The position numbers and the translations under genes were made by a program. The notes under the pieces are model-generated. The model was not told where the DNA came from. It saw only the letters and a program-made list of their open reading frames with translations, and ran no database searches. Positions 6,336 through 55,100 of a stretch of DNA of 64,000 nucleotides are shown one piece after another (position 1 is the stretch's first letter; every line of letters starts with the position of its first letter). The DNA comes from Macrostomum lignano (taxonomy: Eukaryota): contig NIVC01000572.1 in NCBI GenBank assembly GCA_002269645.1, forward strand, positions 186,001 to 250,000. Direction: 5' to 3'.

Positions 6336-6349
6336 CATTCTACTTTAGT

Positions 6350-9345: not shown

Positions 9346-10007
9346 AAGAAGGGAGATTTTATTTCATGCCCGCAATGTTTTCCATCAAGACTCAGTACGA
9401 AAGAAAGGAAAGGTGATTCAGTGCAGACGCGCGACTCCCTCCTAGGCCCATGCCCCCAGGGTCCAGTTTTGCACGCCTTAATTCCCTCCAATTATGATGC
9501 CACAAGGGTTATCGGAAAGGACTTTGTTTCTTCAGTTTGTGCTCAAACCCTCGGCTCAAGTCTCTCAACATCCCCACAACATCGAATTCTATTCCGCTGA
9601 CTGAATACTCAACGAGTTCTCAATAAGCTCCCCGGCCCTTCATCACTCCCCAATCAATTACCTCTCAGATGGATCTGCTCACGATCGACAGTGGTTGCCA
9701 CTAACACTATTACTGGCATATAGTATATCCAGCGAGATATCCTACTCCTACCCTCTAGACTTGAATTAGCTCGCATTGTCACATGCTATATGCGAGTGCT
9801 ATAGAAATTCATGTCTCATTTCTTTAAAAAAAGTTTTTGTGTCGTAATTGTATTGTAATTATAGTTTTTTTACAACGAGTATCTATGTAATTATAGTTTT
9901 TGTTCATTAATAATTTAGTTATCAGTCTATAATACCAGCCACGTGTATTAGCCTTAGGAACCAAAGGTAGATTGTCAATACAATCATTATATACCACACG
10001 ATTCTCA

Positions 10008-10748: not shown

Positions 10749-11247
10749 ACCATCTGTAGCTCGTGTTGAAAAACTGTATGAATGAATAAAATTGACCCTA
10801 CCAAATCCATCCTGAATTGAAATTAAGTTGGAATTTGTTTATCTCCGCGAAAAAATGGTATGGTGGAATCGCTCACTGCACAATTGCCTCAATCCCCATG
10901 GGGGATATTGGCTGTTGTGATCAGTGGTGGGATAATTTGGTTCGCTTGGTTTAATTTTATGCATTATTTCGCCTCTACCATGACTCGTATGTATAGTTGA
11001 TAATAAAATGATACAAGCTATACAATTGTGCGCCACCACTAGCTTTTGAGTTGATGAAATTAACCCATTTAATGTAGCTTTTTTGGAGCCTAGCTTAATA
11101 CCCATCCATCACTGTCTGTAGGCCATTTTGCTGATACTATTTTCTATATGCTGCAGTTTGTCTACAAAAATTTTTCTGTGCATATTGTATCGACTGCTAG
11201 GGCGTGTCTGTGTTTGTTTGTTTGATGTTGCGGTTCCTACATACTTT

Positions 11248-17557: not shown

Positions 17558-18975
17558 CATACGAATCTCAGCCCTGACAAGATAGAGAGACGAATCTCAC
17601 CCCTGACACGATAGAGACGAATCTCACCCCTGACACGTTAGAGACGAATCTCACCCCTGACAAGATAGAGACGAATCTCAGCCCTGACACGATAGAGACG
17701 AATCTCAGCCCTGACAAGATAGAGACGAATCTCACCCCTGACACGTTAGAGACGAATCTCAGCCCTGACAAGATAGAGACGAATCTCAGCCCTGACAAGA
17801 TAGAGACGAATCTCAGCCCTGACAAGATAGAGACGAATCTCAGCCCTGACAAGATAGAGACGAATCTCACCCCTGACACGTTAGAGACGAATCTCAGCCC
17901 TGACAATATAGAGACGAATCTCAGCCCTGACAAGATAGAGATGAATCTCACCCCTGACACGTTAGAGACGAATCTCAGCCCTGACAAGATAGAGACGAAT
18001 CTCGTCCCCTGACACGATAGAGACGAATCTCACCCCTGACACGATGGAGACGAATCTCACCCCTGACAAGATAGAGACGAATCTCACCCCTGACAAGATA
18101 GAGACGAATCTCACCCCTGACACGATGGAGACGAATCTCACCCCTGACAAGATAGAGACGAATCTCACCCCTGACACGATAGAGAGACGAATCTCACCCC
18201 TGACACGATAGAGACGAATCTCACCCCTGACACGATGGAGACGAATCTCACCCCTGACACGATAGAGACGAATCTCGCCCCTGACAAGATAGAGACGAAT
18301 CTCACCCCTGACACGTTAGAGACGAATCTCACCCCTGACAAGATAGAGACGAATCTCACCCCTGACACGTTAGAGACGAATCTCACCCCTGACACGTTAG
18401 AGACGAATCTCACCCCTGACAAGATAGAGACGAATCTCACCCCTGACAAGATAGAGACGAATCTCACCCCTGACACGTTAGAGACGAATCTCAGCCCTGA
18501 CAAGATAGAGACGAGTGCCCTGACAAGATAGAGACGAATCTCACCCCTGACAAGATAGAGACGAGTGCCCTGACAAGATAGAGACGAATCTCACCCCTGA
18601 CAAGATAGAGATGAGTGCCCTGACAAGATAGAGACGAATCTCACCCCTGATAAGATAGAGACGAATCTCACCGGCCTGACACGTTAGAGACGAATCTCAG
18701 CCCTGACAAGATAGAGACGAGTGCCCTGACAAGATAGAGAAGAATCTCACCCCTGACAAGATAGACACGAATCTCACCCCTGACACGATAGAGACGAATC
18801 TCACCCCTGACAAGATAGAGACGAATCTCACCCCTGACAAGATAGAAACGAATCTCACCACTGACACATTAGCCACGAATCTCACCCCCACACGTTAGAC
18901 ACAAATCTCACCCCTGAAACGTTAGAGACGAATCTCACCCCTGACACGTTGGAGACGAATCTCACCCCTAACAGA
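17558..18975. repeat. 27-bp minisatellite, about 52 copies
   Basis: Unit GAGACGAATCTCACCCCTGACAAGATA with 22-bp deletion variants. Confidence 0.95.
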
Positions 18976-19387: not shown

Positions 19388-20725
19388 CGTCTGTTATCCA
19401 CCCCCTGTCGGTTATCCGCCCCCTGTCTGTTATCCGCCCCCTGTCTGTTATCCGCCCCCTGTCTGTTATCCGCCCCCTGTCGGTTATCCGCCCCCTGTCT
19501 GTTATCCGCCCCCTGTCTGTTATCCGCCCCTGTCTGTTATCCGCCCCCTGTCTGCTATCCGCCCCCTGTCTGTTATCCGCCCCCTGTCTGTTATCCGCCC
19601 CCTGTCGGTTATCCGCCCCTGTCTGTTATCCGCCCCCCTCTGTTATCCGCCCCTGTCGGTTATCCGCCCCCTGTCTGTTATCCGCCCCCTGTCTGTTATC
19701 TGCCCCTGTCTGTTATCCGCCCCATGTCTGTTATCCGCCCCCTGTCTGTTATCCGCCCCCTGTCTGTTATCCGCCCCCGTCTGTTATCCGCCCCCTGTCG
19801 GTTATCCTCCCCTGTATGCTATACCCCTGTCTGCTATCCGCCCCCTGTCTGTTATCCGCCTCTGTCTGCTATCCGCCCCCTGTCTGTTATCCGCCTCTGT
19901 CTGCTATCCGCCCCCTGTCTGCTATCTGCCCCTGTCTGTTATCCGCCCCATGTCTGTTATCCGCCCCCTGTCTGCTATCCGCCCCCTGTCTGTTATCCGC
20001 CTCTGTCTGCTATCCGCCCCCTGTCTGCTATCTGCCCCTGTCTGTTATCCGCCCCATGTCTGTTATCCGCCCCCTGTCGGTTATCCGCCCCCTGTCTGTT
20101 ATCTGCCCCTGTCTGTTATCCGCCCCCTGTCTGTTATCTGCCCCTGTCTGTTATCCGCCCCTGTCTGCTATACCCCTGTCTGCTATCCGCCCCCTGTCTG
20201 CTATCCGCCCCCTGTCGGTTATCCGCCCCCTGTCTGTTATCCGCCCCCTGTCTGTTATCCGCCCCCTGTCGGTTATCCGCCCCCTGTCGGTTATCCGCCT
20301 GGCCCGTGTCTGTTATCCGCCCCCTGTCGGTTATCCGCCCCTGTCGGTTATCCGCCCCCTGTCTGTTATCCGCCCCCTGTCTGTTATCCGCCCCTGTCTG
20401 CTATCCGCCCCCTGTCTGTTATCCGCCCCCTGTCTGTTATCCGCCCCTGTCTGCTATCCGCCCCCTGTCTGTTATCCGCCCCCTGTCGGTTATCCGCCCC
20501 CTGTCGGTTATCCGCCTGGCCCGTGTCTGTTATCCGCCCCCTGTCGGTTATCCGCCCCCTGTCTGCTATCCGCCCCCTGTCTGTTATCCGCCCCCTGTCT
20601 GTTATCCGCCCCCTGTCTGTTATCCGCCCCTGTCTCTGTCGGTTATCCGCCTGGCCCGTGTCTGTTATCCGCCCCCTGTCGGTTATCCGCCCCCTGTCGG
20701 TTATCCGCCCCCTGTCTGTTTTCCA
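19388..20725. repeat. 18-19 bp minisatellite, about 70 copies
   Basis: Unit CTGTTATCCGCCCCCTGT(C). Confidence 0.95.
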
Positions 20726-21039
20726 CCCTTTAAAGTAATTTGAAATGAACCTGTTTAAAAATATTTTTTTGTTTTAACTTTAAACTCGAGTATTTCGCTT
20801 CATTTAAAAAAACCCAAAAAACTCGTATTAGAATATTTTATTGCATTATTCAATTTCTGTTTGCGTTCGACATTCGCGATCAAAATAGCAGAAAATTTAT
20901 TAAATTGAATTTGATTGATAAATATACTCATAAAGCAACTTCGATTTCATTCATAAATAGATTATTAATTATTAGCAAATCGAAATGACGCTAATTATAC
21001 GCGCATATGCATGCATTTTTCTATTTTTATTTAAACATA

Positions 21040-21260: not shown

Positions 21261-21409
21261 TGTGCTGTGCATTTGCGATGTTTCAAATGACCTTCAGATG
21301 ATCAGAAGTTCAAGAGTAATAAAATCGTCCATTTTGATTGGCCTAAATCCTGGAAATGCATTTTGAGGGCATTTTTAATCCTCCAAATTCAAGCCAAAGG
21401 AGACTGGGG

Positions 21410-22445
21410 GCGCCCACCAAGAGACAGGGAGCGCCAATCAAATGACAGGGGCGATCACCAAGAGACACGGGCGCCCACCAAGAGACAGGGAGCGCCAATC
21501 AAATGACAGGGGCGATCACCAAGAGACACGGGCGCCCACCAAGAGACAGGGGTGCCCACAAAGAGACAGGGAGCGCCAATCAAATGACAGGGGCGCCCAC
21601 AAAGAGACAGGGAGCGCCAATCAAATGACAGGGGCGATCACCAAGAGACAGGGGTGATCACCAAGAGACAGGGGCGCCAACCAAGAGACAGGGGCGCCCA
21701 CCAAGAGACAGGGGCGATCACCAAGAGACAGGGGCGCCCACCAAGAGACAGGGGGCGCCCACCAAGAGACAGGGGGCGATCACCAAGAGACAGGGGCGCC
21801 CACCAAGAGACAGGGGCAATCACTAAGAGACAGGGGTGCCCACCAAGAGACAGGGGCGATCACCAAGAGACAGGGGCGATCACCAAGAGACAGGGGCGCC
21901 CACCAAGAGACAGGGGGCGCCCACCAAGAGACAGGGGGCGATCACCAAGAGACAGGGACGCAAATCAAAAGACAGGGGTGATCACCAAGAGACAGGGGCG
22001 CCCACCAAGAGACAGGGGCGATCACCAAGAGACAGGGGCGCCCACCAAGAGACAGGGGGCGCCCACCAAGAGACAGGGGGCGATCACCAAGAGACAGGGG
22101 CGCCCACCAAGAGACAGGGGCAATCACTAAGAGACAGGGGCGCCCACCAAGAGACAGGGGCGATCACCAAGAGACAGGGGCGATCACCAAGAGACAGGGA
22201 CGCAAATCAAAAGACAGGGGTGATCACCAAGAGACAGGGGCGCCAACCAAGAGACAGGGGCGCCCACCAAGAGACAGGGGCGCCCACCAAGAGACAGGGG
22301 CGCCCACCAAGAGACAGGGGCGCCCACCAAGAGACAGGGGCGCCAACCAAGAGACAGGGGCGCCAACCAAGAGACAGGGGCGCCGACCAAGAGACAGGGG
22401 CGCCAACCAAGAGACAGGGGCGCCAACCAAGAGACAGGGGCGCAA
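21410..22445. repeat. 20-bp minisatellite, about 50 copies
   Basis: Unit ACCAAGAGACAGGGGCGCCC; same family inverted at 30460-30690. Confidence 0.95.
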
Positions 22446-22764
22446 ACTTTCTTTGTATAATTGCGTCTGCATTCCAGAAAATTCCACATTAAATATATAT
22501 ATTAGTATTTTGCAGTTCACAACTGTAAACTTTCGTCTGTTGCTTACTGTATAACTGCGAAATACAGTAGGAACAAATTGCCACAAATTTATCATAATTA
22601 TATGCAAGAGTTATGAGATTTCGTCGTTTTATCAGCTATAAATTTGCGCATTTGTGGCGAAGCGAAAATGTTCAATTAAGTGTTTTATTAATATTTTTAC
22701 TTGATAATTGCAAGCATCACTGGAGACTGACTCAGCGAGTCGGATTTCTCTGAGTGGGATATTA

Positions 22765-28708: not shown

Positions 28709-29252
28709 TTCAGAAGTCTATTACCAGTTTAGTTATCTGCACCCAGGCTAAAGGTTTTATCGCATCGAATTCCTTGAAGTTTGCAATTCAAAGCAGTCTG
28801 CTGCACGCATTCATATCTGCATCACGCTTAACTAGTCAATCCTAAGTCATGTATTTTTTTACAAAGCGTCTTGTCGGCCGTCAACGTTTCAAGCTCCGCA
28901 AGTTTTTCTTACCATAAAACGTACTGCCGCGTTCGTGCAGTGCCGTGCAGAACTGTTTTCAAAGATCCGTGATTGCTGGAGAATATTCTGGCAAGAATAT
29001 ACTGGGGATCCGAACTCTACGTGTGCCTGTCAGCTGTGCTAGCGGCGTTACTACCCAGACTTGTCGGGACTTAGACAAAAGCAGCTGTTGCCGGGCTGAA
29101 TGTCTAGCATTTCTGTTGCCTGACCATCCAAGTCTTTCCTCGGTACGTGCGCCTTTTAGTCCCTGCAGTTCTGCTGTCTTCACAGACGGCCGACTGCCAT
29201 GGAAGCGATTTTTGGAAACAGGGAACCAGCAAAAAGAGAGAAATTTGGGTTT

Positions 29253-29692
29253 CGAGATGTCAGTAGCTGGGGTGTCAGAGATGTCAGTAGCTGGGGTGTC
29301 AGAGATGTCAGTAGCTGGGGTGTCAGAGATGTCAGTAGCTGGGGTGTCAGAGATGTCAGTAGCTGGGGTGTCAGAGATGTCAGTAGCTGGGGTGTCAGAG
29401 ATGTCAGTAGCTGGGGTGTCAGAGATGTCAGTAGCTGGGGTGTCAGAGATGTCAGTAGCTGGGGTGTCAGAGATGTCAGTAGCTGGGGTGTCAGATGTCA
29501 GTAGCTGGGGTGTCAGAGATGTCAGTAGCTGGGGTGTCAGATGTCAGTAGCTGGGTTGTCAGAGATGTCAGTAGCTGGGGTGTCAGAGATGTCAGTAGCT
29601 GGGGTGTCAGAGATTTCAGTATCTGGGGTGTCAGAGATATCAGTAGCTGGGGTGTCAGAGATGTCAGTAGCTGGGGTGTCAGAGATGTCAGG
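29253..29692. repeat. 24-bp minisatellite, about 18 copies; inverted copy of the 4352-6335 family
   Basis: Unit GAGATGTCAGTAGCTGGGGTGTCA, the exact reverse complement of the 4.3-6.3 kb unit. Confidence 0.96.
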
Positions 29693-30392: not shown

Positions 30393-30856
30393 CAGTGGCG
30401 TAAGCATGCACTAATTTTAATTGGAGGGCGCTGCAGATAAGGAATACCAATTTTTAGTGTCTTGGTTGGCGCCCCTGTCTCTGGGTTGGCGCCCCTGTCT
30501 CTGGGTTGGCGCCCCTGTCTCTTGGTTGGCGCCCCTGTCTCTGGGTTGGCGCCCCTGTCTCTGGGTTGGCGCCCCTGTCTTTTGGTTGGCGTCCCTGTCT
30601 CTTGGTTGGCGCCCCTGTCTCTTGATTGGCGCCCCTGTCTCTTGATTGGCGCCCCTGTCTCTTGATTGGCGCCCCTGTCTCTGGTTGGCGTCCAGCTCCT
30701 GTCTCCCAGGCCGTAGATGCCACGTCCAAGAGGTGGCACAAGTTGAGCTGCAGTCATTCGTCAAGCTTGGCTGCCTCTTTATTTGGTTTCTGGAGGAGCG
30801 CACTTTTTCTGGAGCCGATTGCGGGGGTCCGCCCCCACCCCCCAAGTGCGTCACTG
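30393..30856. mobile_element. Putative hAT-type MITE carrying the 20-bp GGCGCCCCTGTCTC minisatellite (30460-30690)
   Basis: Left end CAGTGGCGTA, right end TGCGTCACTG (imperfect TIR) with a C-rich subterminus. No matching 8-bp TSD seen. Confidence 0.45.
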
Positions 30857-33290: not shown

Positions 33291-34742
33291 TTGATTACTG
33301 GGTTGCCTAGCTACAGAGCTAGAAGTGAGTGTTCTTTGATTACCAAAAGTCGGGTAATAAGGAACACATCATACCCTCGACGGCCTCGAAGAGATTGTTT
33401 ACTGGAAGCCGAAGTTTTTTATGATGAAAAACGAATTAAAGATAAGTTTTTATCATAGTCTTTTTTAATTTTCCTTTGTCAAAAATAATAATAGGGCCTA
33501 GTGACCAAAAGTGTGATATCTAGTTGATTTTCAGTTAATTTTTAAAATAAAATTACGTATACTACGCCTTTTCGCAGAAACCAAAACTTTGATGATTTTT
33601 AAATTAGGAAAACTACATCTTATAAATGTGGTAGTTGCGGACTCCCACTAACGAATATTTAAATTTTATAATAACATTTCATGGACTGTCCCCTTTTTCC
33701 GCCGCCCCATTTCTGGCCCTACCCGTTCATCCTTTGGCGAAATTCTATGACGTATTTTGTTCCTTTTCTGGTATAACTGCATGCCCTCTTTCTGGATTTT
33801 CGTGCCCTTTTTCTGTTTAGTTTTGTTTTTCTTTGAGTATCTCTGCGGAACTTTTGCTCGCCAAATTCTGGGCCTTAGAGTCCACGTCCTGTCCCCATTC
33901 TATGGACCACCTTGCCCACCTTCTGCTCCTTTTTTGTTATTTAGCTTGGCTCTCTCTCTCCCTTCCGCCCCCAGTTGCCTCCCCTTCCTTCACCTTCCTC
34001 CTCCCTTCTCGCTCTTCCCCCCTTCTATCGCGACATAAACTTAATACATAAATTTAATACTTGTTATTTGTTCCCAGTTGAGTAAAGCCAAATACTAAGA
34101 CTAGTGATTCGAATTTAACTAATTTAGAGCCCCGCACCGCGGCTCCCCCAGAACTTTCTGTCGTCTGGTCGACTCCGGTATAGTAATAATTTTCAGTGAT
34201 TGGTTAATAAACTGACGTCAATTGCTCTTCGTTTAATACTTAATTAAAAGCCGTAGTTTATCTTAAGTCATTTGCCCGTGGGGCGTAAAACAACCAAGTT
34301 CTCATCTCAAAGAAAGCTCTGAGATTTCAACGTTCCGTAATACGTAAATTACGGTGGTGGCAGCGCTACTCTACCAACAGTAATCAGTCAAGAAACCGAA
34401 GTGCATTAACTACGGTGTCTGAGGACCCTCTCTGAACGCTCGCGCCTAACGAAGACCGCTCGTCTACGACCGAAACTACCCTCCCCCCCCCGGAATTGAG
34501 GACCCCGGCAGTCGGAGTAAAACAGGAGGCAAAACTTCCGTTGTGATTCATCTGCGCGATTTTCCGGCTTCAATTCGTGCGAACGCAACGACAACCGGTT
34601 TCAAAGAAACCCCGAGTTCAAATCAGCAATCGCCAAGTTTACTACCAACTACCAACAAATTTGTGCATTTGTTTCCCCATTGATATTCGCATTGATATTC
34701 AAATTTTAACAAAAGCAAAATACTAAAAGCAACCCGTAGCAT

Positions 34743-35427
34743 GAAACTTTACACAGAGTAAACTGCAACCGTGAAACGACTATTGGTCAAGTTTCAGCTC
34801 GATATGTAACTTTGGCTCTGAGCAGGTGCGATTTTCGATGTGTTCTATTTAAAATACATGTGATTCCAAAATTCATATTGATATTCGAGTACAGGTACTT
34901 CTGATTCACCGCTCTTGACGAAACTTTACACAGAGTAAACTGCAACCGTGAAACGACTATTGGTCAAGTTTCAGCTCGATATGTAACTTTGGCTCTGAGC
35001 AGGTGCGATTTTCGATGTGTTCTATTTAAAATACATGTGATTCCAAAATTCATATTGATATTCGAGTACAGGTACTTCTGCTTCACTGATCTTGACGAAA
35101 CTTTACACAGAGTAAACTGCAACCGTGAAACGACTATTGGTCAAGTTTCAGCTCGATATGTAACTTTGGCTCTGAGCAGGAGCGATTTTCGATGTGTTCT
35201 ATTTAAAATACATGTGATTCCAAAATTCATATTGATATTCGAGTACAGGTACTTCTGCTTCACTGATCTTGACGAAACTTTACACAGAGTAAACTGCAAC
35301 CGTGAAACGACTATTGGTCAAGTTTCAGCTCGATATGTAACTTTGGCTCTGAGCAGGAGCGATTTTCGATGTGTTCCATTTAAAATACATGTGATTCCAA
35401 AATTCATATTGATATTCGAGTACAGGT
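34743..35427 (+). repeat. 177-bp tandem array, left arm (about 3.9 units)
   Basis: GAAACTTTACACAGAG recurs at 34743, 34920, 35097, 35274. Confidence 0.96.
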
Positions 35428-38004
35428 GGAGGAGATGGCGCAACGTGACACAGTGGTCATTCTCGGAGACCTGAACGCAGTTCTGCGTAGGTCCGAGCGA
35501 TCGTTGTTTGTGACAGCGCGCGAGAACGGCAACACCAGAGCGCTGGAGGACTTCCTGGAGAGACAGGACATGGTGTCGGCCAACACCAGATTCCGCAAGT
35601 CACCGGGCAGGCTCGCGACCTTCGTGGGCTGCAAGCAGAGGCGGCGGAACGCGCGCGGCCGGAACGCTACGCGGAGGCTGGCACAGCTCGACCACGTGCT
35701 TGTGCGCTTTCGTGAGTGCCGCCGCGTCACCAACTGCCGCACCATTACGCCGCTGGCTCTGCTGTCCGACCATCGGCTGCTCATCTGCGACCTTCGGCTT
35801 CGGGACCCGCTCTACCGTCCGCCAAAGCGGCCACCGCGGCGCTACTACTGCGCGCTCAGGGACACCGAGACGCGGCGTCGCTTTGCCGGTGCCTTTGTCA
35901 CTGCGCTGGGCGACAAGTGTGGAGGAGCCGAGTACGCGGAGGTGAGCGCTGCAGTTCGAGCCGCTGCGGAGCAAGCAGTCCCGCTGATGCGACCGGCCCA
36001 GCGCGGGCAGCCGGTCTGGCAGGACGACCCCGCGATCGACGAAGCGAGGGAAGATCTGGAGAGGCTCCGTCTGAGTGGGCGGCAAACTCGCGAGGCGGAG
36101 GAGGCTCTGGCGGCTGTCTACCTGCAGCGGCAGCAGTCCGCTGTCGATGACGCCATCCACGCCGTCTCTGCCGCAGGGCCCGATGCCAGAGGGCGCGTGG
36201 CCTGGTCCGTCATCAACACTCTGACGGGGCGAAAGCGGCGCATCACGCTCAACCAAGCAGGCGACATTCCGGATGAGCGCAGGAACGAGCTGCGCGAGTT
36301 CTTCGCCGCCATTGTCAACGCGCCGCCCCCTCCGCTTCCAGAAAATCTGAGGCTGCCGCCGGAGACGCCGTTGCCGGCGGAGGAGAGCTTCAACGTTGCC
36401 CCAGTCAGCACAGCCGACGTTGTGAAGTTCGCTCGGCAGTCGCCGGGCGGCAAAGCGCTTGGTCCGGACGAGGTGCCCACCGAGGCGCTGCGGATCCACT
36501 GCGTGGCCACTGAGGTCGCCAGAGTGATGAACCGCGTGCTTTCCGGTGAGGTGGCGCCAAACGAATGGACCACGGCGCACATCGTCGCCATTCCAAAGAA
36601 GCCGGGCACCACCAAGCTCGAGGAGCATCGAGGCATCTGCCTACAGTCCTGCGCCGCGAAGCTGTTCAGTCGGAGTAAGCTGTTTCGCTGTACAGCAGCT
36701 CGAACTGGCTGACGGCGTGCCCGCCGCCTCCCGCATGCTGCTATCGCGGTTACAGACTGTGCTGGACCCGTACCTGTGGCCTGAGCAGAACGGATTCCGG
36801 CCCCTTCGCAGCACAGTGACGCAGATCCTGGCTCTTCGGCGAGTCATCGAGGAGGCGCGCATCCGCCAGTTGACCCTGATCCTGATCTTCGTCGATTTCA
36901 GGAAGGCCTTCGACTCGGTCGTGAGGGACGTGAGGGAGGTGCTCCGTGCGTACAACGTGCCAGACCTGCTGATTTCTGCTGTCATGGCGCTATACCACGG
37001 CACGACGGCTGCTGTCTCAACACCGGACGGCCTATCGGATTTCTTCGAGACATCCTCCGGGGTGCTCCAGGGAGATGCGCTAGCGCCGTTCCTATTTATT
37101 CTGGTGCTTGACTGGGTGCTACGGACTGCTCTGCCTTCCAACGACGACAGCTTCCTGCTGCGGCGACGCGTGGGTCGACGCCAACCGGAGAGACGGCTCA
37201 GCGTGCTTGGCTACGCCGATGACCTCGCCCTCGAGGGCGCCCAACGACAGCTGGATAGACAGGTTGCCGTTGCGGCGAGCGTCGGCCTGGTGGTCAACAC
37301 GCAGAAGACCGTCGTGCTATGCGTGCCGGACGACACCGAGGCTGCAATCTTCTGCCGAGGCGCTGACGGACAGGCGAGTGAGCTTCCAAGATGTCAGCAG
37401 TTCGTCTACCTCGGCGGTCTGGTTCCCGACGTCCGCGAGGATCTGCGGCGTCGCCGAGGACTTGCCTGGGCTGCCTTTCGTTCTATAAGGTCAGTCTTGC
37501 AGTCCGATCGAGGCCCTACCGGACCGCCAGAGGGCGGCGCTGTTCCAGGCGGTGATCGAGACCGTCCTGTTATACAACGCTGAGACCTGGACGCTGATAG
37601 ACTCGCTCGAGGCTCAAGTCGACGCGGCGCACGCTGGCCTGCTGCGCGCCGCCTTCAAGATCGGCAACGAGCGAGTCACCAACACGGCGCTCTATCATCG
37701 CGCCGGCCTGGCCCGTCCTAGCGATCTGCTGCGCCGTCGGCGACTCCAGCTGGCAGGCCACGTCATCCGCGCCGAGGCCTACTGTCCGGAGCCGGTGCAG
37801 GAGGTGCTGCTACTTACGTTGCAGGCACTTTACCGGCGGGGACAGGCGAGGACTCGGCGCTACGTCGACTGTCTGCTGGCTGACGCCGGCGCCCCGGACT
37901 CTGTCGGCGGTGCGGCCTTTGTTCGCGCCCAAGCTTCGAAGCGCGCCATCTGACGCTGCTTTTGCGAACTGACAGCGTACTCTGTTGTTGTTGTTGTTGT
38001 TGTT
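35428..38004 (+). mobile_element. 5'-truncated, frameshifted RTE-type non-LTR retrotransposon (APE endonuclease C-terminus + reverse transcriptase)
   Basis: APE motifs ILGDLNA, NGN..L..FL, LDHVLV, SDHRLL. RT motifs ALGPDEVP, IVAIPKK, HRGICL, QNGFR, FVDFRKAFDSV, GVLQGDALAPFLF, YADD. C-terminal LLYNAETWTL..RRRLQLAGHVIR, stop at 37953. About 61-bp frameshifting insert at 36668-36728 and a second frameshift near 37505. Short 3' UTR then a (GTT)7 tail at 37984-38004. Clade assigned from motifs and tail type. Confidence 0.9.
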
Positions 38005-39546
38005 TGGAATCACATGTATTTTAAATGGAACACATCGAAAATCGCTCCTGCTCAGAGCCAAAGTTACATATCGAGCTGAAACTTGACCAATAGTCGTTTC
38101 ACGGTTGCAGTTTACTCTGTGTAAAGTTTCGTCAAGATCAGTGAAGCAGAAGTACCTGTACTCGAATATCAATATGAATTTTGGAATCACATGTATTTTA
38201 AATAGAACACATCGAAAATCGCTCCTGCTCAGAGCCAAAGTTACATATCGAGCTGAAACTTGACCAATAGTCGTTTCACGGTTGCAGTTTACTCTGTGTA
38301 AAGTTTCGTCAAGATCAGTGAAGCAGAAGTACCTGTACTCGAATATCAATATGAATTTTGGAATCACATGTATTTTAAATGGAACACATCGAAAATCGCT
38401 CCTGCTCAGAGCCAAAGTTACATATCGAGCTGAAACTTGACCAATAGTCGTTTCACGGTTGCAGTTTACTCTGTGTAAAGTTTCGTCAAGATCAGTGAAG
38501 CAGAAGTACCTGTACTCGAATATCAATATGAATTTTGGAATCACATGTATTTTAAATAGAACACATCGAAAATCGCACCTGCTCAGAGCCAAAGTTACAT
38601 ATCGAGCTGAAACTTGACCAATAGTCGTTTCACGGTTGCAGTTTACTCTGTGTAAAGTTTCGTCAAGATCAGTAAAGCAGAAGTACCTGTACTCGAATAT
38701 CAATATGAATTTTGGAATCACATGTATTTTAAATAGAACACATCGAAAATCGCACCTGCTCAGAGCCAAAGTTACATATCGAGCTGAAACTTGACCAATA
38801 GTCGTTTCACGGTTGCAGTTTACTCTGTGTAAAGTTTCGTCAAGATCAGTGAAGCAGAAGTACCTGTACTCGAATATCAATATGAATTTTGGAATCACAT
38901 GTATTTTAAATAGAACACATCGAAAATCGCACCTGCTCAGAGCCAAAGTTACATATCGAGCTGAAACTTGACCAATAGTCGTTTCACGGTTGCAGTTTAC
39001 TCTGTGTAAAGTTTCGTCAAGATCAGTAAAGCAGAAGTACCTGTACTCGAATATCAATATGAATTTTGGAATCACATGTATTTTAAATAGAACACATCGA
39101 AAATCGCACCTGCTCAGAGCCAAAGTTACATATCGAGCTGAAACTTGACCAATAGTCGTTTCACGGTTGCAGTTTACTCTGTGTAAAGTTTCGTCAAGAT
39201 CAGTGAAGCAGAAGTACCTGTACTCGAATATCAATATGAATTTTGGAATCACATGTATTTTAAATGGAACACATCGAAAATCGCTCCTGCTCAGAGCCAA
39301 AGTTACATATCGAGCTGAAACTAGACCAATAGTCGTTTCACGGTTGCAGTTTACTCTGTGTAAAGTTTCGTCAAGATCGGTGAATCAGAAGTACCTGTAC
39401 TCGAATATCAATATGAATTTTGGAATCACATGTATTTTAAATAGAACACATCGAAAATCGCTCCTGCTCAGAGCCAAAGTTACATATCGAGCTGAAACTT
39501 GACCAATAGTCGTTTCACGGTTGCAGTTTACTCTGTGTAAAGTTTC
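38003..39546 (-). repeat. 177-bp tandem array, right arm (about 8.7 units, inverted relative to the left arm)
   Basis: GTGTAAAGTTTC ends at 38130, 38307 ... 39546 with period 177. Confidence 0.96.
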
Positions 39547-40295
39547 ATGCTACGGGTTGCTTTTAGTATTTTGCTTTTGTTAAAATTAGAATATCAATGC
39601 GAATATCAATGGGGAAACAAATGCGTACAAATTTTTCTTCCTCCGCCCCCACCTCATAAACTTATAGTAAAAATATACTGTACTGTACTCAGTGTACTGG
39701 GTTTTTTCGCTAGCGCTAAGATGCGAAATTGCATCCAAGTTCTAATTTCAGGATGCGATCTGGAAAGTCAGGATATTATAGCATCAGCATCCCTAGTATT
39801 TTTCTAGGGATTAGGCCTAACCTTGTCCTTGACCTTAGGCCTTAGGGATTGACTTTTAGTTTTACCTCATAGCCTGCGTTTTATTTAGGCCCTACTGGAA
39901 CTAGGATGCAAAAAATTGATTATACCCATCCAAGGTCTAATTTGAGAATGCGATTTTGAAAGTCAAGATGCTGTAGCATACCAATTGTACAAAAAATAAA
40001 GCTAGGCACTATACATTTTATTTAACAACAAAAACAGAAAATTCGCTCTGGCCTCTGGCATTAAAAGTTAAGGAACTTCTGTCTGATTCATACTTAAGCC
40101 CTTAAGGTATCTAACAAGGCTGAAGAAATAAAAGTTTTATCTGTCACTTTCTCCAACACTATATGACCTATTCATTAGCATAACTGCCAAATTATAAGAA
40201 TAGGGGGCCTATTAGAAGTGTTAAAATTGAAAAATAAGTTTTGCAATTTTTTACAATAAACATTTTTACTAATTTAACTTAGCCCATTATCTTTA

Positions 40296-40973
40296 GGCAG
40301 TGCTTATCCCCACTGTACCGTAGGAATAATTTCTGTCTTATTCCAACGGTACCGTGCGAATAATTTTCTGCTTATCCGCACGGCACACTGACGAGATAGC
40401 TGCCGGCTGCCCTATCTTCTACATATGCTGTGGGAATAATTTTCTGCTTATCCGCATGGCACACTGACGAGATAGCTACCCTATCTTCTACATATGCTGT
40501 GGGAATAATTTTCTGCTTATCCGCATGGCACACTGACGAGATAGCTGCCCTATCTTCTACATAAGCCATGGGGGAAGTTTAGTACATACGATTTGAGTGC
40601 AGTATAACAACATAACTTGGCTTGAACATTTGTTCTAAAGAAATAAAGATTTAACGACTTTTCTATGAGAAAGAATTTTTTTGTGTAGTAACAAATGATT
40701 TAAATTAAATTAACTCCAAGAATTGTTTATTATTTAAATTTATTGTATCCTCAGTTCAAATTCCCTTTCAATAAGCTATAACTATAAACTATTCACACAC
40801 AGCATATATATGTAGCAGATAGGGCAGCTAGTAAAGCAGAGGGAATAAAACAGAGGACGTGTAGGGCAGCTATCTTGTCAGTGTGCCATGCGGATAAGCA
40901 GAAAATTATTCGCACAGTACCGTTGGAATAAGACAGAAATTATTCCTACGGTACCGTGGGGATAAGCACTGCC
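40296..40973. mobile_element. PIF/Harbinger (Tourist-like) MITE with about 110-bp TIRs and an internal about 69-bp tandem expansion
   Basis: GGCAGTGCTTATCCCCAC... at 40296 and ...GTGGGGATAAGCACTGCC ending at 40973; TTA flanks both ends (40293-40295, 40974-40976); subterminal segment repeated 3 times at about 40365-40560. Confidence 0.85.
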
Positions 40974-41314
40974 TTATTTAGAACTTAGTTAGAAAAAACA
41001 GTTTCCTTTTCATTCATTTTCATGCTTATAAATGTACTATTTGTTTGCTGTTTTTTGTTGTAGAATAGGCCTATCATATCTTTATTCATAATAACAGTAT
41101 TTGCACTAGTGCAATATCATTGTATAATATAATTTTATAGAAATGATATTGATTTATTAATGGTGATTAAAGATGAATAATGGATAGGCCTGTCTAACTA
41201 TAAGCATTAAGAATGACAAATACTACATAAGAAAGAAAAAGTGCTGCTCTGGGTTTGAGATGGGCATCTATTTTATACAGATTAGCATTTTCAACCCCTC
41301 CCCCTGCTGCTAGT

Positions 41315-44266: not shown

Positions 44267-46623
44267 ATGATCTGCCAGCTTGTGTGTCTTTTGTTTATTT
44301 CGACTGCCTCTCCAGTATTGTCTGTAGTTCCTCAGACAGTCTATGGAGATCTCTTAGCTAATGTTCTTAACCCAAATACCTATCTTAAGACTGCAATGCC
44401 AATATGCAATCATGGTGAAAAACTTCACGTTGGCCAGGATATGATTCTGTACCAGCTCTATGACCTGGAAGAGCCAACTCAGATGCTCACTGTAAGTGCA
44501 TTTCAATTTTAAATATCAATATTGGTAAATTATTTTTTGTCTATATCTCATCTGGACCCCATCTTATATCCAAATCTTTAAACTTTCATTTTCCATCTTA
44601 TCGCTCCAATGAGCGCTGCCCAGCCTTCAACCCCTTTCCCCCACCGCCCCCATCTTATCGCTCCAATGTACGCAGCCCAGTTTTCAACCCCTTCCCCCCA
44701 CCACCCCCATCTTATCGCTCCAATGTACGCAGCCCAGTCTTCAACCCAAATGTGCTTCAACCCCTTTCCTCACCACCCCATCTTATCGCCCCAACGCGCT
44801 GTTACCCGTCTAACTTTGCCATCTCTTAAATGGCACAAAGATTTTTAATTAGTCCAATTCCCAATCTAGGTAGACGTATGGGTTGAGTCAACCTGGCGAG
44901 ACTGTCGCCTAACCTGGGACCCGGCTGCCTATCACAACGTGACGAGTTTCGCTGTGAAAGCCACTGAGATCTGGCATCCGGATTTGGTGTTCTTCGAATC
45001 TTTGCACGGCAATTTCGCCGAAGCTCTCGGCGTTCTTGGCCAGTCGACTGCTAGAGTTAGATATGACGGCATGGTGGAGCTCGGCTCCCAGATGCTCATT
45101 AACACTTTCTGCAGGGTGGACCTCCGCCTTTATCCGTTCGATAAGCAGCGCTGCAACATCACGTTCGCCTCGTGGAGCAAAGATAATCGAACTTTTGTCC
45201 TGAGGAAGAAAGTGGACTCAGGAACCGGGGCCGATCACGCTTTCAAGGCGGCTAGCAACGGAGCCTGGCTGGTTGAAGGCTTCCCGGCGTTTAATAAAAT
45301 TGTCCAGCGCAAGGTTGGGTTAAATGAGAGCGCCGAGCCTGCCTGGTTTACCGAGGTCACCTTCCAGCTGCAGCTGCGCAGGAAGCCGCTCTATCATCAG
45401 GTGGGTCAGGGGGCTGCTGTCAGGTTGTGGATAACTAGATAAGCATCCAGGGTCCGAAAAATAATAATTAGATAAGCATCCAGGGTCCGAAAAATAATAA
45501 TTAGATAAGCATTCAGGGTCCGAAAAATAATAATTAGATAAGCATTCAGGGTCCGAAAAATAATAATTAGATAAGCATCCAGGGTCGTGAATAATGATAA
45601 TTACCAGGGTCGTGAATAATAATAATTATATAAGCATCCAAGGTCGGTGAATAATAATAATTATATAAGCATCCAAGGTCGGTGAATAATAATAATTATA
45701 TAAGCATCCAGGGTCGGTGAATAATAATAATTAGATAAGCATCCAGGGTCGGTAAATAATAATAATTAGATAACACATCCAGGGTCGTGAATAATAATAA
45801 TTAGATAACACATCCAGGGTCGTGAATAATAATAATTAGATAACACATCCAGGGTCGTGAATAATGATAATTAGATAAGCATTCAGGGTCGGAATAATAA
45901 AATTTAATAAGCATTTAGGCCCGTTAAAAACGTTTCTATGTCAAGAATCGCTAAATAGTCAAGCAACTAATAAGTGGACAAGCACCCGGGGATAATACAC
46001 CAGGATCCAGACAAAAAACTTTGTATTTATTATCCTACAATATGTAGTACTAATGAGTAGTACAAATTTCGCTAATCCCCAACCAGGCCTACATGGTGTT
46101 TCCATGCGCTCTGCTCACCTGGCTAGCCCTGCTAGTTTACCTGTTGCCAGCCGAATCCGGAGAGAAAATCGGTTACGTAACCACACTGCTTCTGTCGCTG
46201 GTCGTATTCCTACTGATGCTGGCTGACAATATACCCAGGTCTGGCGATTGCGTCCCCATACTTGGCCAATACTTTGTCATGTGTGTGCTGTTAGTAGCGC
46301 TGGCTAATATTACCACCGTACTCAGCTACAGTCTCAGTCTGCGCAGCGACGAGTTCTCACCGCCGAAATTGTTGCTGGCCTGCCTGTCTCTGGCTGGCCT
46401 GTGCGGACTGCAGTTCCGCTGCGATGGCGGCTGGAGGCTGTTCACCTTCTCTTGGCGGCAGCTCATGCCCAGCCGCAACGGTGGCGCCAAACAGCTGAGC
46501 AACAGCGACAAATGGCGCCTGTTGGGCATTGTGTGCGACCGGTTCTGCCTGCTGGTGTACGGCGTGTTGTGCACCGCCCTAACCATCTGGATTGCCGGCT
46601 TTTCTAACGAGACTGAGGACTGA
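44267..46623 (+). CDS. Nicotinic acetylcholine receptor-like Cys-loop ion channel subunit, non-alpha type, 430 aa
   Basis: Exons 44267-44491, 44870-45400, 46087-46623, all phase 0 with GT-AG. Signal peptide, WRDCRLTW, IWHPD, Cys-loop CRVDLRLYPFDKQRC, FASW, M1-M2 linker PAESGEK, M2 TTLLLSLVVFLLML, M4 DRFCLLVY. Confidence 0.93.
44545..44790. repeat. About 55-bp degenerate tandem repeat in nAChR intron 1
   Basis: CCCCATCTTATCGCTCCAATG..GCCCAG..TTCAACCCC repeated 3-4 times. Confidence 0.75.
45435..45898. repeat. About 33-bp minisatellite in nAChR intron 2, about 14 copies
   Basis: Unit TTAGATAAGCATCCAGGGTCCGAAAAATAATAA with variants. Confidence 0.92.
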
Positions 46624-49137: not shown

Positions 49138-52100
49138 CTAGGCAACAAAGGCCGCTCTCTTGTGTCGCCTGCCTATCATCTCGCGGTCCATCAGTGCCTT
49201 TTTAGCCAAGTATTTTTGTCGTTTTATTTTGCGTTTTAAGTCTTGGGGAATGTTTGGTATAAACCAGTTCATCACACTGGTCAATATGGTCACGAGTTGC
49301 TGCATGTGAAGATTTTTTGTGAGGTTTATATATTAGCTTCATTGGTTATACTCATTAATCTTGATACACATCTCTCAAGAATGTTTGGTCAGCCACCACC
49401 ACCTCACTCTGGATTGATTGGTCAGCCACCACCACCTCACTCTGGATTGATTGGTCAGACACCACCACCTCACTCTGGATTGATTGGTCAGCAGCCACCA
49501 CCTCACCCTGGATTGATTGGTCAGCAGCCACCACCTCACTCTGGATTGATTGGTCAGCAGCCACCACCTCACTCTGGATTGATTGGTCAGCCACCACCAC
49601 CTCACTCTGGATTGATTGGTCAGCCACCACCACCTCACTCTGGATTGATTGGTCAGCCACCACCACCTCACTCTGGATTGATTGGTCAGCCGCCACCACC
49701 TCACTCTGGATTGATTGGTCAGCCACCACCACCTCACTCTGGATTGATTGGTCAGCCACCACCACCTCACTCTGGATTGATTGGTCAGCCACCACCACCT
49801 CACTCTGGATTGATTGGTCAGCCACCACCACCTCACTCTGGATTGATTGGTCAGCCACCACCACCTCACTCTGGATTGATTGGTCAGCCACCACCACCTC
49901 ACTCTGGATTGATTGGTCAGCCACCACCACCTCACTCTGGATTGATTGGTCAGCCACCACCACCTCACTCTGGATTGATTGGTCAGCCACCACCACCTCA
50001 CTCTGGATTGATTGGTCAGCCACCACCACCTCACTCTGGATTGATTGGTCAGCCACCACCACCTCACTCTGGATTGATTTGTCAGCCACCACCACCTCAC
50101 TCTGGATTGATTGGTCAGCCACCACCACCTCACTCTGGATTGATTGGTCAGCCACCACCACCTCACTCTGGATTGATTGGTCAGCCACCACCACCTCACT
50201 CTGGATTGATTGGTCAGCCGCCACCACCTCACTCTGGATTGATTGGTCAGCCGCCACCACCTCACTCTGGATTGATTGGTCAGCCACCACCACCTCACTC
50301 TGGATTGATTGGTCAGCCACCACCACCTCACTCTGGATTGATTTGTCAGCCACCACTACCTCACTCTGGATTGATTGGTCAGCCACCACCACCTCACTCT
50401 GGATTGATTGGTCAGCCGCCACCACCTCACTCTGGATTGATTGGTCAGCCACCACCACCTCACTCTGGTTTGATTGGTCAGCAGCCACCACCTCACTCTG
50501 GATTGATTGGTCAGCCACCACCACCTCACTCTGGATTGATTGGTCAGACACCACCACCTCACTCTGGATTGATTGGTCAGCAGCCACCACCTCACCCTGG
50601 ATTGATTGGTCAGCAGCCACCACCTCACTCTGGATTGATTGGTCAGCAGCCACCACCTCACTCTGGATTGATTGGTCAGCCACCACCACCTCACTCTGGA
50701 TTGATTGGTCAGCCACCACCACCTCACTCTGGATTGATTTGTCAGCCACCACTACCTCACTCTGGATTGATTGGTCAGCCGCCACCACCTCACTCTGGAT
50801 TGATTGGTCAGCCGCCACCACCTCACTCTGGATTGATTGGTCAGCCACCACCACCTCACTCTGGATTGATTGGTCAGCCGCCACCACCTCACTCTGGATT
50901 GATTTGTCAGCCACCACTACCTCACTCTGGATTGATTGGTCAGCCACCACCACCTCACTCTGGATTGATTGGTCAGCCGCCACCACCTCACTCTGGATTG
51001 ATTGGTCAGCCACCACCACCTCACTCTGGGTTGATTGGTCAGCCACCACCACCTCACTCTGGATTTATTAGTCAGCCGCCACCACCTCACTCTGGATTGA
51101 TTGGTCAGCCACCACCACCTCACTCTGGATTGATTTGTCAGCCACCACCACCTCACTCTGGATTGATTTGTCAGCCACCACCACCTCACTCTGGATTGAT
51201 TGTTCAGCCACCACCACCTCACTCTGGATTGATTGGTCAGCCACCACCACCTCACTCTGGATTGATTGGTCAGCCGCCACCACCTCACTCTGGATTGATT
51301 GGTCAGCCGCCACCACCTCACTCTGGATTGATTGGTCAGCCACCACCACCTCACTCTGGATTGATTGGTCAGCCACCACCACCTCACTCTGGATTGATTG
51401 GTCAGCCACCACCACCTCACTCTGGATTGATTGGTCAGCCACCACCACCTCACTCTGGATTGATTGGTCAGCCACCACCACCTCACTCTGGATTGATTGG
51501 TCAGCCGCCACCACCTCACTCTGGATTGATTGGTCAGCCACCACCACCTCACTCTGGATTGATTGGTCAGCCACCACCACCTCACTCTGGATTGATTGGT
51601 CAGCCGCCACCACCTCACTCTGGATTGATTGGTCAGCCACCACCACCTCACTCTGGATTGATTGGTCAGCCGCCACCACCTCACTCTGGATTGATTGGTC
51701 AGCCGCCACCACCTCACTCTGGATTGATTTGTCAGCCACCACTACCTCACTCTGGATTGATTGGTCAGCCGCCACCACCTCACTCTGGATTGATTGGTCA
51801 GCCGCCACCACCTCACTCTGGATTGATTGGTCAGCCACCACCACCTCACTCTGGATTGATTGGTCAGCCACCACCACCTCACTCTGGATTGATTGGTCAG
51901 CCACCACCACCTCACTCTGGATTGATTGGTCAGCCACCACCACCTCACTCTGGATTGATTGGTCAGCCACCACCACCTCACTCTGGATTGATTGGTCAGC
52001 CACCACCACCTCACTCTGGATTGATTGGTCAGCCACCACCACCTCACTCTGGATTGATTTGTCAACCACCACAACCTCACTCTGGATTGATTGGTCAGCA

Positions 52101-55100
52101 GCCACCACCTCACTCTGGATTGATTGGTCAGCAGCCACCACCTCACTCTGGATTGATTGGTCAGCCACCACCACCTCACTCTGGATTGATTGGTCAGCCG
52201 CCACCACCTCACTCTGGATTGATTGGTCAGCCACCACCACCTCACTCTGGATTGATTGGTCAGCCACCACCACCTCACTCTGGATTGATTGGTCAGCCAC
52301 CACCACCTCACTCTGGATTGATTGGTCAGCCACAACTACCTCACTCTGGATTGATTGGTCAGCCACCACCACCTCACTCTGGATTGATTGGTCAGCCACC
52401 ACTACCTCACTCTGGATTGATTGGTCAGCCACCACCACCTCACTCTGGATTGATTGGTCAGCCGCCACCACCTCACTCTGGATTGATTGGTCAGCCGCCA
52501 CCACCTCACTCTGGATTGATTGGTCAGCCGCCACCACCTCACTCTGGATTGATTGGTCAGCCGCCACCACCTCACTCTGGATTGATTGGTCAGCAGCCAC
52601 CACCTCACTCTGGATTGATTGGTCAGCCACCACCACCTCACTCTGGATTGATTGGTCAGCAGCCACCACCTCACTCTGGATTGATTGGTCAGCCACCACC
52701 ACCTCACTCTGGATTTATTAGTCAGCCGCCACCACCTCACTCTGGATTGATTGGTCAGCCACCACCACCTCACTCTGGATTGATTGGTCAGCCACCACCA
52801 CCTCACTCTGGATTGATTGGTCAGCCACCACCACCTCACTCTGGATTGATTGGTCAGCCACCACCACCTCACTCTGGATTGATTGGTCAGCCACAACTAC
52901 CTCACTCTGGATTGATTGGTCAGCCACCACCACCTCACTCTGGATTGATTGGTCAGCCACCACTACCTCACTCTGGATTGATTGGTCAGCCACCACCACC
53001 TCACTCTGGATTGATTGGTCAGCCGCCACCACCTCACTCTGGATTGATTGGTCAGCCGCCACCACCTAACTCTGGATTGATTGGTCAGCCGCCACCACCT
53101 CACTCTGGATTGATTGGTCAGCCGCCACCACCTCACTCTGGATTGATTGGTCAGCCACCACTACCTCACTCTGGATTGATTGGTCAGCAGCCACCACCTC
53201 ACTCTGGATTGATTGGTCAGCAGCCACCACCTCACTCTGGATTGATTGGTCAGCCGCCACCACCTCACTCTAGATTTATTGGTCAGCCGCCACCACCTCA
53301 CTCTGGATTGATTGGTCAGCCGCCACCACCTCACTCTGGATTGATTGGTCAGCCACCACCACCTCACTCTGGATTGATTGGTCAGCAGCCACCACCTCAC
53401 TCTGGATTGATTGGTCAGCCACCACCACCTCACTCTGGATTGATTGGTCAGCAGCCACCACCTCACTCTGGATTGATTGGTCAGCCACCACCACCTCACT
53501 CTGGATTGATTGGTCAGCCGCCACCACCTCACTCTGGATTGATTGGTCAGCCACCACTACCTCACTCTGGATTGATTGGTCAGCCACCACTACCTCACTC
53601 TGGATTGATTGGTCAGCCACCACCACCTCACTCTGGATTGATTGGTCAGCCGCCACCACCTCACTCTGGATTGATTGGTCAGCCACCACCACCTCACTCT
53701 GGATTGATTGGTCAGCCACCACCACCTCACTCTGGATTGATTGGTCAGCCGCCACCACCTCACTCTGGATTGATTGGTCAGCCACCACCACCTCACTCTG
53801 GATTTATTAGTCAGCCGCCACCACCTCACTCTGGATTGATTGGTCAGCCACCACCACCTCACTCTGGATTGATTGGTCAGCCGCCACCACCTCACTCTAG
53901 ATTGATTGGTCAGCCACCACCACCTAACTCTGGATTGATTGGTCAGCCACCACCACCTCACTCTGGATTGATTGGTCAGCCGCCACCACCTCACTCTGGA
54001 TTGATTGGTCAGCCGCCACCACCTCACTCTGGATTGATTGGTCAGCCACCACCACCTCACTCTGGATTGATTGGTCAGCCGCCACCACCTCACTCTGGAT
54101 TGATTGGTCAGCCACCACTACCTCACTCTGGATTGATTGGTCAGCCACCACCACCTTACTCTGGATTGATTGGTCAGCCACCACCACCTCACTCTGGATT
54201 GATTGGTCAGCCACCACCACCTCACTCTGGATTGATTGGTCAGCCGCCACCACCTCACTCTGGATTGATTGGTCAGCCGCCACCACCTCACTCTGGATTG
54301 ATTGGTCAGCCACCACTACCTCACTCTGGATTGATTGGTCAGCCGCCACCTCCTCACTCTGGATTGATTGGTCAGCCGCCACCACCTCACTCTGGATTGA
54401 TTGGTCAGCCGCCACCACCTCACTCTGGATTGATTGGTCAGCCGCCACCACCTCACTCTGGATTGATTGGTCAGCCACCACCACCTCACTCTGGATTGAT
54501 TGGTCAGCCACCACCAACTCACTCTGGATTGATTGGTCAGCCACCACCAACTCACTCTGGATTGATTTGTCAGCCACCACCACCTCACTCTGGATTGATT
54601 GGTCAGCCACCACCACCTCACTCTGGATTGATTGGTCAGCCACCACCACCTCACTCTGGATTGATTTGTCAGCCACCACCACCTCACTCTGGATTGATTG
54701 GTCAGCCGCCACCACCTCACTCTGGATTGATTGGTCAGCCACCACCAACTCACTCTGGATTGATTGGTCAGCCACCACCACCTCACTCTGGATTGATTGG
54801 TCAGCCACCACCACCTCACTCTGGATTGATTGGTCAGCCACCACCACCTCACTCTGGATTGATTTGTCAGCCACCACCACCTCACTCTGGATTGATTGGT
54901 CAGCCACCACCACCTCACTCTGGATTGATTGGTCAGCCACCACCACCTCACTCTGGATTGATTGGTCAGCCACCACCACCTCACTCTGGATTGATTGGTC
55001 AGCCGCCACCACCTCACTCTGGATTGATTGGTCAGCCACCACCACCTCACTCTGGGTTGATTGGTCAGCCACCACCACCTCACTCTGGATTGATTGGTCA

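Follow-up and report, generated by a model that had tools for sequence, protein, structure and literature searches.

A probable Foldback-like transposon with 177-bp tandem-repeat arms and a nested RTE-like retrotransposon copy in the flatworm Macrostomum lignano

The Foldback (FB) element of Drosophila melanogaster has modular terminal inverted repeats (TIRs) built of tandem repeats of 10–31 bp, between which a central segment can be carried, and its target-site duplications (TSDs) measure 9 bp. Many FB copies hold NOF, a specific partner sequence rather than a truncated long interspersed nuclear element (LINE), which encodes a putative transposase-like protein of the FB element itself. Here we analyze a stretch of 64,000 nucleotides from Macrostomum lignano (assembly GCA_002269645.1, contig NIVC01000572.1, positions 186,001–250,000 of the forward strand; hereafter ‘the window’) in which two arrays of a 177-bp unit face each other in opposite orientation around a copy of an RTE-like non-long-terminal-repeat (non-LTR) retrotransposon. 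The structure is real and sharply delimited. We read positions 34663–39626 of the window as, probably, a non-autonomous Foldback-like class II (TIR) transposon in which a dead-on-arrival RTE copy is nested at or near the centre. A search of the full-text literature found no foldback element described for Macrostomum.

Three described systems offer a direct comparison. Tetris of Drosophila virilis consists of a flanking domain and TIRs of ~220-bp tandem repeats, with TSDs of 8–10 bp and no open reading frame (ORF) (Dias et al. 2014, PMC4079207). Its flanking domain and its repeats share a 37-bp stretch at about 80% (PMC4079207). The M. lignano element is laid out in the same way, with a unique external domain followed by a variable count of satellite-sized repeats (177 bp, against ~220 bp in Tetris), a putative TSD of 8 bp that falls within the Tetris range, and no coding capacity of its own. 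Likewise, its flanking domain has a stretch in common with its repeats, namely the 11-mer ATTGATATTCG in place of the 37 bp of Tetris. The two differ in that their sequences are unrelated and come from different phyla, and the flanking domain measures 78 bp here but up to 866 bp in Tetris. The M. lignano element is also left without an inner TIR domain or a middle domain, because its centre consists wholly of the RTE insertion.

Tm1, a Mutator/Foldback family of root-knot nematodes (Meloidogyne), has tandem-repeat TIRs and TSDs of 8–10 bp (Gross & Williamson 2011, PMC3169594). Short non-inverted terminal motifs stand between its TSD and its inverted repeat, and nested insertions are on record (PMC3169594). 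The two TIRs of one Tm1 element are unequal in length because they are composite and contain tandem repeats, as are the two arms described here. In both cases non-inverted nucleotides lie just inside the TSD (the 7-bp motifs A1 and A2 in Tm1, GT and GT here). The Tm1 unit is much shorter, however (~14 bp against 177 bp), and some members of Tm1 are autonomous, with a Mutator-like transposase. Galileo, Kepler and Newton are Foldback-like elements of the P superfamily in Drosophila buzzatii, in which a nested partial LINE-like element was found; the long TIRs of Galileo have been proposed to cause breaks through the secondary structures that they form (PMC2775673). LINE fragments nested in foldback elements are thus a kind of structure that is already known. 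Galileo resembles the M. lignano element in its long, internally repetitive TIRs and in having non-autonomous copies with nested insertions, but its TSDs measure 7 bp and its P-like transposase is known. The LINE nested in it also differs, being flanked by a 13-bp TSD of its own and ending in poly(A), whereas the RTE copy here has no TSD and ends in (GTT)n.

Tandem Repeats Finder (TRF) describes the left array as 3.9 copies of a 177-bp period with 99% matches, and the right array as 8.7 copies of the same unit in the opposite orientation with 98% matches. The longest inverted pair returned by an inverted-repeat search joins 34665–35427 to 38862–39624 (763 nt, 99% complementary). At full length, the arms measure 763 nt on the left and 1622 nt on the right, are ~99% complementary, and make up the entire element apart from the nested RTE copy. 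The perfect inverted repeat begins at 34665 (GCATTTGTTTCCCC...) and finishes at 39624. Each arm starts from the outside with a terminus of 78 nt, the left copy of which differs from the reverse complement of the right copy by a sole mismatch at position 37. A 36-nt terminus probe matched twice in the window, once at each arm end, and a 44-nt unit probe matched four times on the plus strand and nine times on the minus strand, every one within the two arms, where zero matches were expected for either probe.

For a comparison of individual units, the arms were split from the outside inward (L1–L4 on the left, R1–R9 on the right), and seven variable columns were tabulated. The variant GATTCACCG is confined to the outermost units, L1 and R1. 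At the inner end, L3–L4 agree with R8–R9 (types AAT and AAC), and both L4 and R9 are truncated. Taken singly, L2 equals R4 and R6, L3 equals R8, and L4 equals R9, while R3–R4 equals R5–R6, a two-unit duplication within the right arm. Along the best unit path, 3 of the 763 positions of the left arm disagree with the right arm; along the colinear path, 10 do. Because position-specific variants match between the arms, a common ancestral arm pattern followed by a later change in unit number is indicated. This is the pattern expected for the TIRs of one element, unlike that of two independent arrays. The mirror at the inner end is suggestive rather than proof, because the GGAGC/TTCCA type of the innermost units is not unique to them: R7 also has it, as does R2 with one further change. 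The TIRs are very long and modular, with an unequal repeat number of 3.87 and 8.72 units.

Those unit counts could be wrong, as long, near-identical inverted arrays are hard to assemble. One may also ask whether a foldback-chimeric long read or a mis-join made the inverted arrangement as a whole. Chimeric foldback reads give a palindrome that is symmetric about one point and reaches the read end, whereas the two arms here differ in length and in unit order, and between them lies a 2.6-kb non-palindromic RTE copy with distinct 5′ and 3′ junctions. The outer flanks, moreover, are unique and unrelated and yet carry a matching 8-bp repeat. We therefore regard an assembly or read artefact as very unlikely.

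Terminus and unit have one short motif in common. The left terminus contains CATTGATATTCG twice in tandem, and ATTGATATTCG is found as two tandem copies in each terminus and as one copy in each unit, with no further site in the window. Derivation of the terminus from the 177-bp unit was considered and rejected: the exact 11-mer is the sole shared stretch, and the remainder aligns no better than shuffled sequence (local alignment score 13 for terminus against unit, shuffles averaging 11 and reaching 17 at most; not significant). As a separate observation, the 177-bp unit corresponds to exactly 59 codons, and one frame is open through both arrays, giving ORFs at 34989–35474 on the plus strand (161 residues) and at 37810–39300 on the minus strand (496 residues). 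The translation of three units had no match among 5.8 billion proteins, and the Pfam matches of the array ORF are repeat artefacts that contain no passing stretch. The open frame is probably a matter of chance, since no protein homologues exist among the sequences searched.

The ends of the element are marked by the 8-bp direct repeat ACAAATTT, which stands outside both TIR tips, 2 nt (GT) away on each side. Beyond it, the two flanks are unrelated to each other in a sensitive self-BLAST. When unlinked pairs of random sites in the window were taken as a control, a direct repeat of at least 8 bp lying 0–3 nt from both ends was seen in 0.03% (3e-4) of the pairs. Linked random pairs gave 1.8% by the same measure, a rate that is inflated because such pairs often fall in the tandem arrays of the window. 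The flanks of the element lie outside tandem arrays, and the unlinked-pair control replaced the linked one. The repeat is thus present on both sides, 2 nt off a perfect TIR, in a single copy of the element, and can also be read as part of a palindrome. Indeed, since the left side reads ACAAATTTGT, which is a palindrome, ACAAATTT could be an extension of the TIR. Beyond that putative extension nothing is duplicated (CTACCAAC versus TTCTTCCT), and we favour the 8-bp TSD over the TIR extension, for the single copy at hand, because the extension gives the element no TSD whatever. A TSD length of 8 bp is compatible with several superfamilies, with hAT, P, Mutator and Merlin as candidates.

The flanking repeat also bears on the possibility of a one-off local rearrangement, in which a 177-bp array and the adjacent unique sequence were duplicated in inverted orientation, for example through break repair or through replication with fold-back or template switching, with the RTE copy either serving as a pre-existing spacer or captured during the repair. 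A single copy is what such an event would leave, and an RTE without a TSD at a lost apex is what repair-associated capture would give; the window is, in addition, saturated with minisatellites, some families of which occur in both orientations kilobases apart. A rearrangement of this kind does not predict, however, that an 8-bp direct repeat should stand outside both ends (P about 3e-4), that the homology of the arms should end at the same nucleotide on both sides, or that a terminal motif should recur in every unit. The complete native 3′ end of the RTE, with its tail against the array, also speaks for target-primed insertion and not for a recombined fragment. On balance, we judge the one-off rearrangement unlikely.

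All that the original prediction had described about this architecture was reproduced. The opposed 177-bp arrays around the RTE were recovered by TRF and by the inverted-repeat search, and its inverted outer terminus of about 80 bp proved to be the 78 nt with one mismatch. The mirrored variants stand as well, with L1 and R1 exclusively sharing GATTCACCG and the innermost units sharing GGAGC/TTCCA, though R7 and R2 have the latter too. The flanking 8-bp repeat lies on both sides, and a unique outer domain, unequal tandem-repeat TIRs and a putative 8-bp flanking duplication support the Foldback-like architecture that had been proposed.

The whole interval between the arms is a single plus-strand copy of a non-LTR retrotransposon. 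The Pfam domain RVT_1 matches its middle ORF at 1.8e-17, and the first 116 residues resemble the last third of Exo_endo_phos at a score below threshold. An exhaustive HMMER search showed that homology starts at residue 1 or 2 of the ORF beginning at 35426, which aligns to residues 112–528 of a 938-residue relative and has 91% amino-acid identity to an M. lignano UniRef protein. All of the best named relatives are M. lignano proteins (up to 91% amino-acid identity), and a further protein of this species (...SVR followed by VEEMAQRDTVVILGDLNA) is identical from the codon that straddles the 5′ junction. The source names of the relatives (‘exonuclease III’, ‘hypothetical protein’) are uninformative on clade. 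Two full-length relatives, P0122 and P0139, have 938–940 residues with Exo_endo_phos and RVT_1 and no other domains, and the relatives point to an element size of ~3.3–3.8 kb for the family. Measured against them, the nested copy is without the first ~110 residues and the 5′ untranslated region (UTR), and the break falls inside the endonuclease domain. Alignment with 25 relatives by tblastn revealed two frame breaks in total; at the first, where the frame changes from 2 to 3, residues 158–164 of the closest relative, P0001, align twice. The 3′ UTR measures 49 nt including (GTT)7. The closest relative contig, L001, with 82.6% nucleotide identity, has the same UTR and ends in ...ACAGCGTAGC(TTG)5, and the more distant relative L002 has a (TTA)7 tail.

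Malik and Eickbush reportedly characterized the RTE clade in 1998 by a single ORF for apurinic/apyrimidinic (AP) endonuclease and reverse transcriptase (RT) and by a short 3′ UTR with a tail of short tandem repeats. The ORF layout and the trinucleotide-tailed short UTR suggest that the nested copy fits this clade: its full-length relatives encode an RT and an N-terminal AP endonuclease in a single ORF of ~940 residues, and its 3′ UTR is very short, with a trinucleotide repeat in place of poly(A). It departs from the clade in having no TSD, a 5′ truncation and two frameshifts. The copy has been non-functional from the time of its insertion.

Since the left array immediately precedes the RTE and runs on the same strand, one might take the 177-bp units for the retrotransposon’s own monomeric 5′-UTR repeats, like those of mouse L1. 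We give this idea next to no weight; it is effectively refuted by a junction in the middle of the endonuclease (residue ~111, not the ORF start) and by the same array in inverted orientation beyond the 3′ tail. Nor does the arm resemble any contig of the RTE relatives, among them L002, which reaches 513 nt further 5′.

The junctions tell how the RTE may have entered. On the left, codon 35426–35428, where protein homology begins, spans the junction; nucleotide homology to a relative starts at insert base 8, and the GT at 35426–35427 can be assigned to the array or to the RTE (microhomology). On the right, the (GTT)n tail directly adjoins the array at 38002/38003, and the TT at 38003–38004 can be assigned to either. 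Comparison of 35427/35428 with 38002/38003 revealed no direct repeat that could be a TSD of the RTE. The inner ends of the arms are 26 nt out of register (unit position 154 on the left, 128 on the right), and therefore at least 26 bp of the apex, plus any spacer, were lost. A copy that keeps its native 3′ end intact but is cut short at the 5′ end bears the mark of target-primed reverse transcription (TPRT). The junctions, known from a single copy, fit endonuclease-dependent insertion with a target deletion, or alternatively the capture of cDNA at a break in the apex of the palindrome. A stronger form of the latter would hold that the RTE is not central by chance: a hairpin or cruciform formed by the long perfect palindrome was cut at its apex and cDNA patched the break, in a structure-directed and possibly endonuclease-independent manner. 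We consider this idea doubtful.

The original prediction had left two accounts side by side. According to one, the RTE inserted at or near the apex and replaced what lay there; this is supported by the native 3′ end, the 5′ truncation, the missing TSD and the 26-bp register gap. Its statement that no spacer remains besides the RTE also holds, since protein homology runs from the junction codon and the tail lies against the right array. According to the other, a composite unit moves RT sequence as cargo, the foldback element and its RTE insert transposing together in the style of FB–NOF. The RTE does lie wholly between intact TIRs with intact termini, and any later mobilization in trans would take it along. 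Three lines of evidence, nevertheless, make a true composite improbable to a high degree. First, neither the window nor the metagenome and viral contigs yielded another copy with the junctions 35427/35428 and 38002/38003. Second, the RTE is dead; because it is truncated and frameshifted, it offers the element nothing, and it encodes nothing related to TIR transposition. Third, the single TSD is explained equally well by the foldback element inserting first and the RTE later, a nesting for which Galileo is the precedent (PMC2775673). The analogy with FB–NOF is itself weak: the insert here is a LINE fragment unrelated to TIR transposition, truncated and frameshifted and with the hallmarks of TPRT. 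The RTE is thus probably an accidental passenger and not functional cargo, and nothing supports the cargo claim.

Several observations weigh against a Foldback-like transposon that took up an RTE in or close to its centre, and they keep our confidence below certainty. The element is known from one copy alone: the window holds no second terminus, unit or empty site, and no second terminus or unit was found in the metagenome and viral collections. In the searches themselves, a sensitive self-BLAST of the terminus, the unit, the RTE and both flanks against the window returned nothing beyond the element, exact-pattern scans of metagenome contigs with the terminus gave 0 matches, and those of metagenome and viral contigs with the unit also gave 0; the frame of the unit, as said, has no protein matches, and Rfam had no match across the window. 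Window ORFs of at least 130 residues contain no transposase domain, a search that covered 64 kb, so that the partner may lie elsewhere. To our knowledge, the tip GCATTTG... matches no tip motif of hAT, P or Mutator. The 2-nt offset of ACAAATTT from the perfect TIR permits its reading as an 8-bp TIR extension with a 2-nt indel. The evidence that the RTE struck the true centre is the match of two inner unit types, for which we estimate coincidence at ~0.05–0.1, and inverted pairs within one minisatellite family are not rare in the window.

If the Foldback-like transposon is nonetheless the correct reading, its history may be reconstructed as follows. The element would have integrated by cut-and-paste through a transposase supplied in trans, an 8-bp staggered cut giving rise to the duplication of ACAAATTT. 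The recurrence of ATTGATATTCG in the termini and in the units makes it a candidate repeated transposase-binding site. Both arms would stem from one arm pattern, with the number of units then altered via unequal exchange or slippage. In a later step, an RTE-family non-LTR retrotransposon would have entered the palindrome at its centre or close to it. The minus-strand 3′ end ...TTCCAAA, which lies at unit position 128 of the right arm, may have served to prime reverse transcription on the (GUU)n tail; the primer ...GATTCCAAA-3′ is predicted to pair with this tail over 2–3 nt. The cDNA would have stopped inside the endonuclease-coding region and, via 2–3 nt of microhomology, become attached to unit position 154 of the left arm, with the loss of the apex (26 bp or more) and of any spacer. 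The RTE would have been dead on arrival, with the two frameshifts acquired since. The coordinates of all parts are given in Table 1.

Table 1. Coordinates (window positions) of the putative Foldback-like element, its flanking repeat and the nested RTE-like copy
Feature	Position	Strand	Basis or remark
Left putative TSD copy, ACAAATTT	34655..34662	.	Best flanking direct repeat, at offset 2/2
GT between TSD and TIR; the right end also has GT, so not inverted	34663..34664	.	
Left outer TIR domain, 78 bp, unique	34665..34742	+	Inverted-repeat search, probes, unit comparison
Left arm array, 3.87 units (L1–L4), ending at unit position 154	34743..35427	+	TRF, unit probe
5′-truncated RTE-like non-LTR retrotransposon, 2575 bp	35428..38002	+	RVT_1; homology from about residue 111
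RTE segment 1: C-terminal part of AP endonuclease, linker, start of RT region	35426..36688	+	
First frame disruption, ~61 extra nt relative to P0001	36689..36749	+	tblastn
Reverse-transcriptase domain, Pfam RVT_1	36729..37415	+	Residues 62–290 of ORF 36546–37583
Second frame disruption, about +4 nt	37505..37522	+	tblastn, frame 3 to 1
RTE stop codon, positioned as in relatives	37951..37953	+	P0001 residue 569 aligns to 37950
RTE 3′ UTR (~30 nt) and (GTT)7 tail from 37984	37954..38002	+	UTR in common with L001
Right arm array, 8.72 units (R9 to R1, left to right), inner end at unit position 128	38003..39546	-	
Right outer TIR domain, 78 bp, one mismatch to left copy	39547..39624	-	
GT between TIR and TSD	39625..39626	.	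Read directly
Right putative TSD copy, ACAAATTT	39627..39634	.	P about 3e-4

The surroundings of the element are extremely dense in minisatellites, with 45 TRF rows of periods ~14–57 bp over positions 1–64000 (for example 49385–55751, 10000–10747, 11247–12764, 17561–18973 and 19389–20728). Most long ORFs of the window are translations of minisatellites. An array of 193 copies of a 33-bp unit gives an ‘ORF’ of 2238 residues whose matches to FG-nucleoporin and mucin families in Pfam are spurious, and an array of 50 15-bp units reads as ‘pentapeptide repeats’. A 20-bp minisatellite (GGGGCGCCCACCAAGAGACA and its complement) occurs in opposite orientations at 21407–22447 and 30457–30690, 8 kb apart. 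Whether these arrays, at 22 kb and 30 kb, make up another foldback element was considered; they probably do not, as no paired unique termini were seen. Two 24-bp arrays, CTGACACCCCAGCTACTGACATCT ×83 at 4338–6336 and GGGTGTCAGAGATGTCAGTAGCTG ×19 at 29247–29691, represent one family in both orientations 23 kb apart, since their consensus units are exact reverse complements.

Other features lie closer to the element or stand apart from the repeats. The right flank contains a 53-bp direct repeat with 83% identity (39732–39784 and 39927–39979). Located 670 bp downstream of the foldback element is a small TIR element of ~680 bp (40295–40978), whose 110-nt TIRs are 96% complementary and contain 34-bp tandem subrepeats, and which holds an array of 69 bp ×2.3 at 40406–40563. 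Its ends read CT-TTA-GGCAGTGC...GCACTGCC-TTA-TTTAG, with a 3-bp TTA duplication as in miniature inverted-repeat elements of the PIF/Harbinger type. On the plus strand, two ORF segments at 44939–45442 and 46093–46623 match a Cys-loop neurotransmitter-gated ion channel in its ligand-binding domain and its transmembrane region, with Pfam values of 1.3e-20 and 1.8e-19. They probably represent exons of a host gene situated ~5 kb downstream of the foldback element. A leucine-rich-repeat ORF on the plus strand at 15308–16036 (LRR_8, 8.8e-19) is possibly another host gene exon.

The M. lignano element would add a flatworm case to the scattered foldback elements (Tetris, Galileo, Tm1) that build their TIRs from satellite-sized repeats. 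It has been proposed that elements of this kind seed satellite DNA and act as hotspots for breakage and inversion, and a genome rich in tandem repeats is a good test ground for the link between foldback elements and satellites. The nested RTE is a clean single case of LINE insertion with target deletion at the centre of a palindrome. Taken alone it is an ordinary nested insertion, and it does not demonstrate that retrotransposon sequence moves as cargo. Were structure-directed patching true, foldback elements of this genome would be recurrent LINE traps, perhaps carrying the LINE onward when mobilized in trans.

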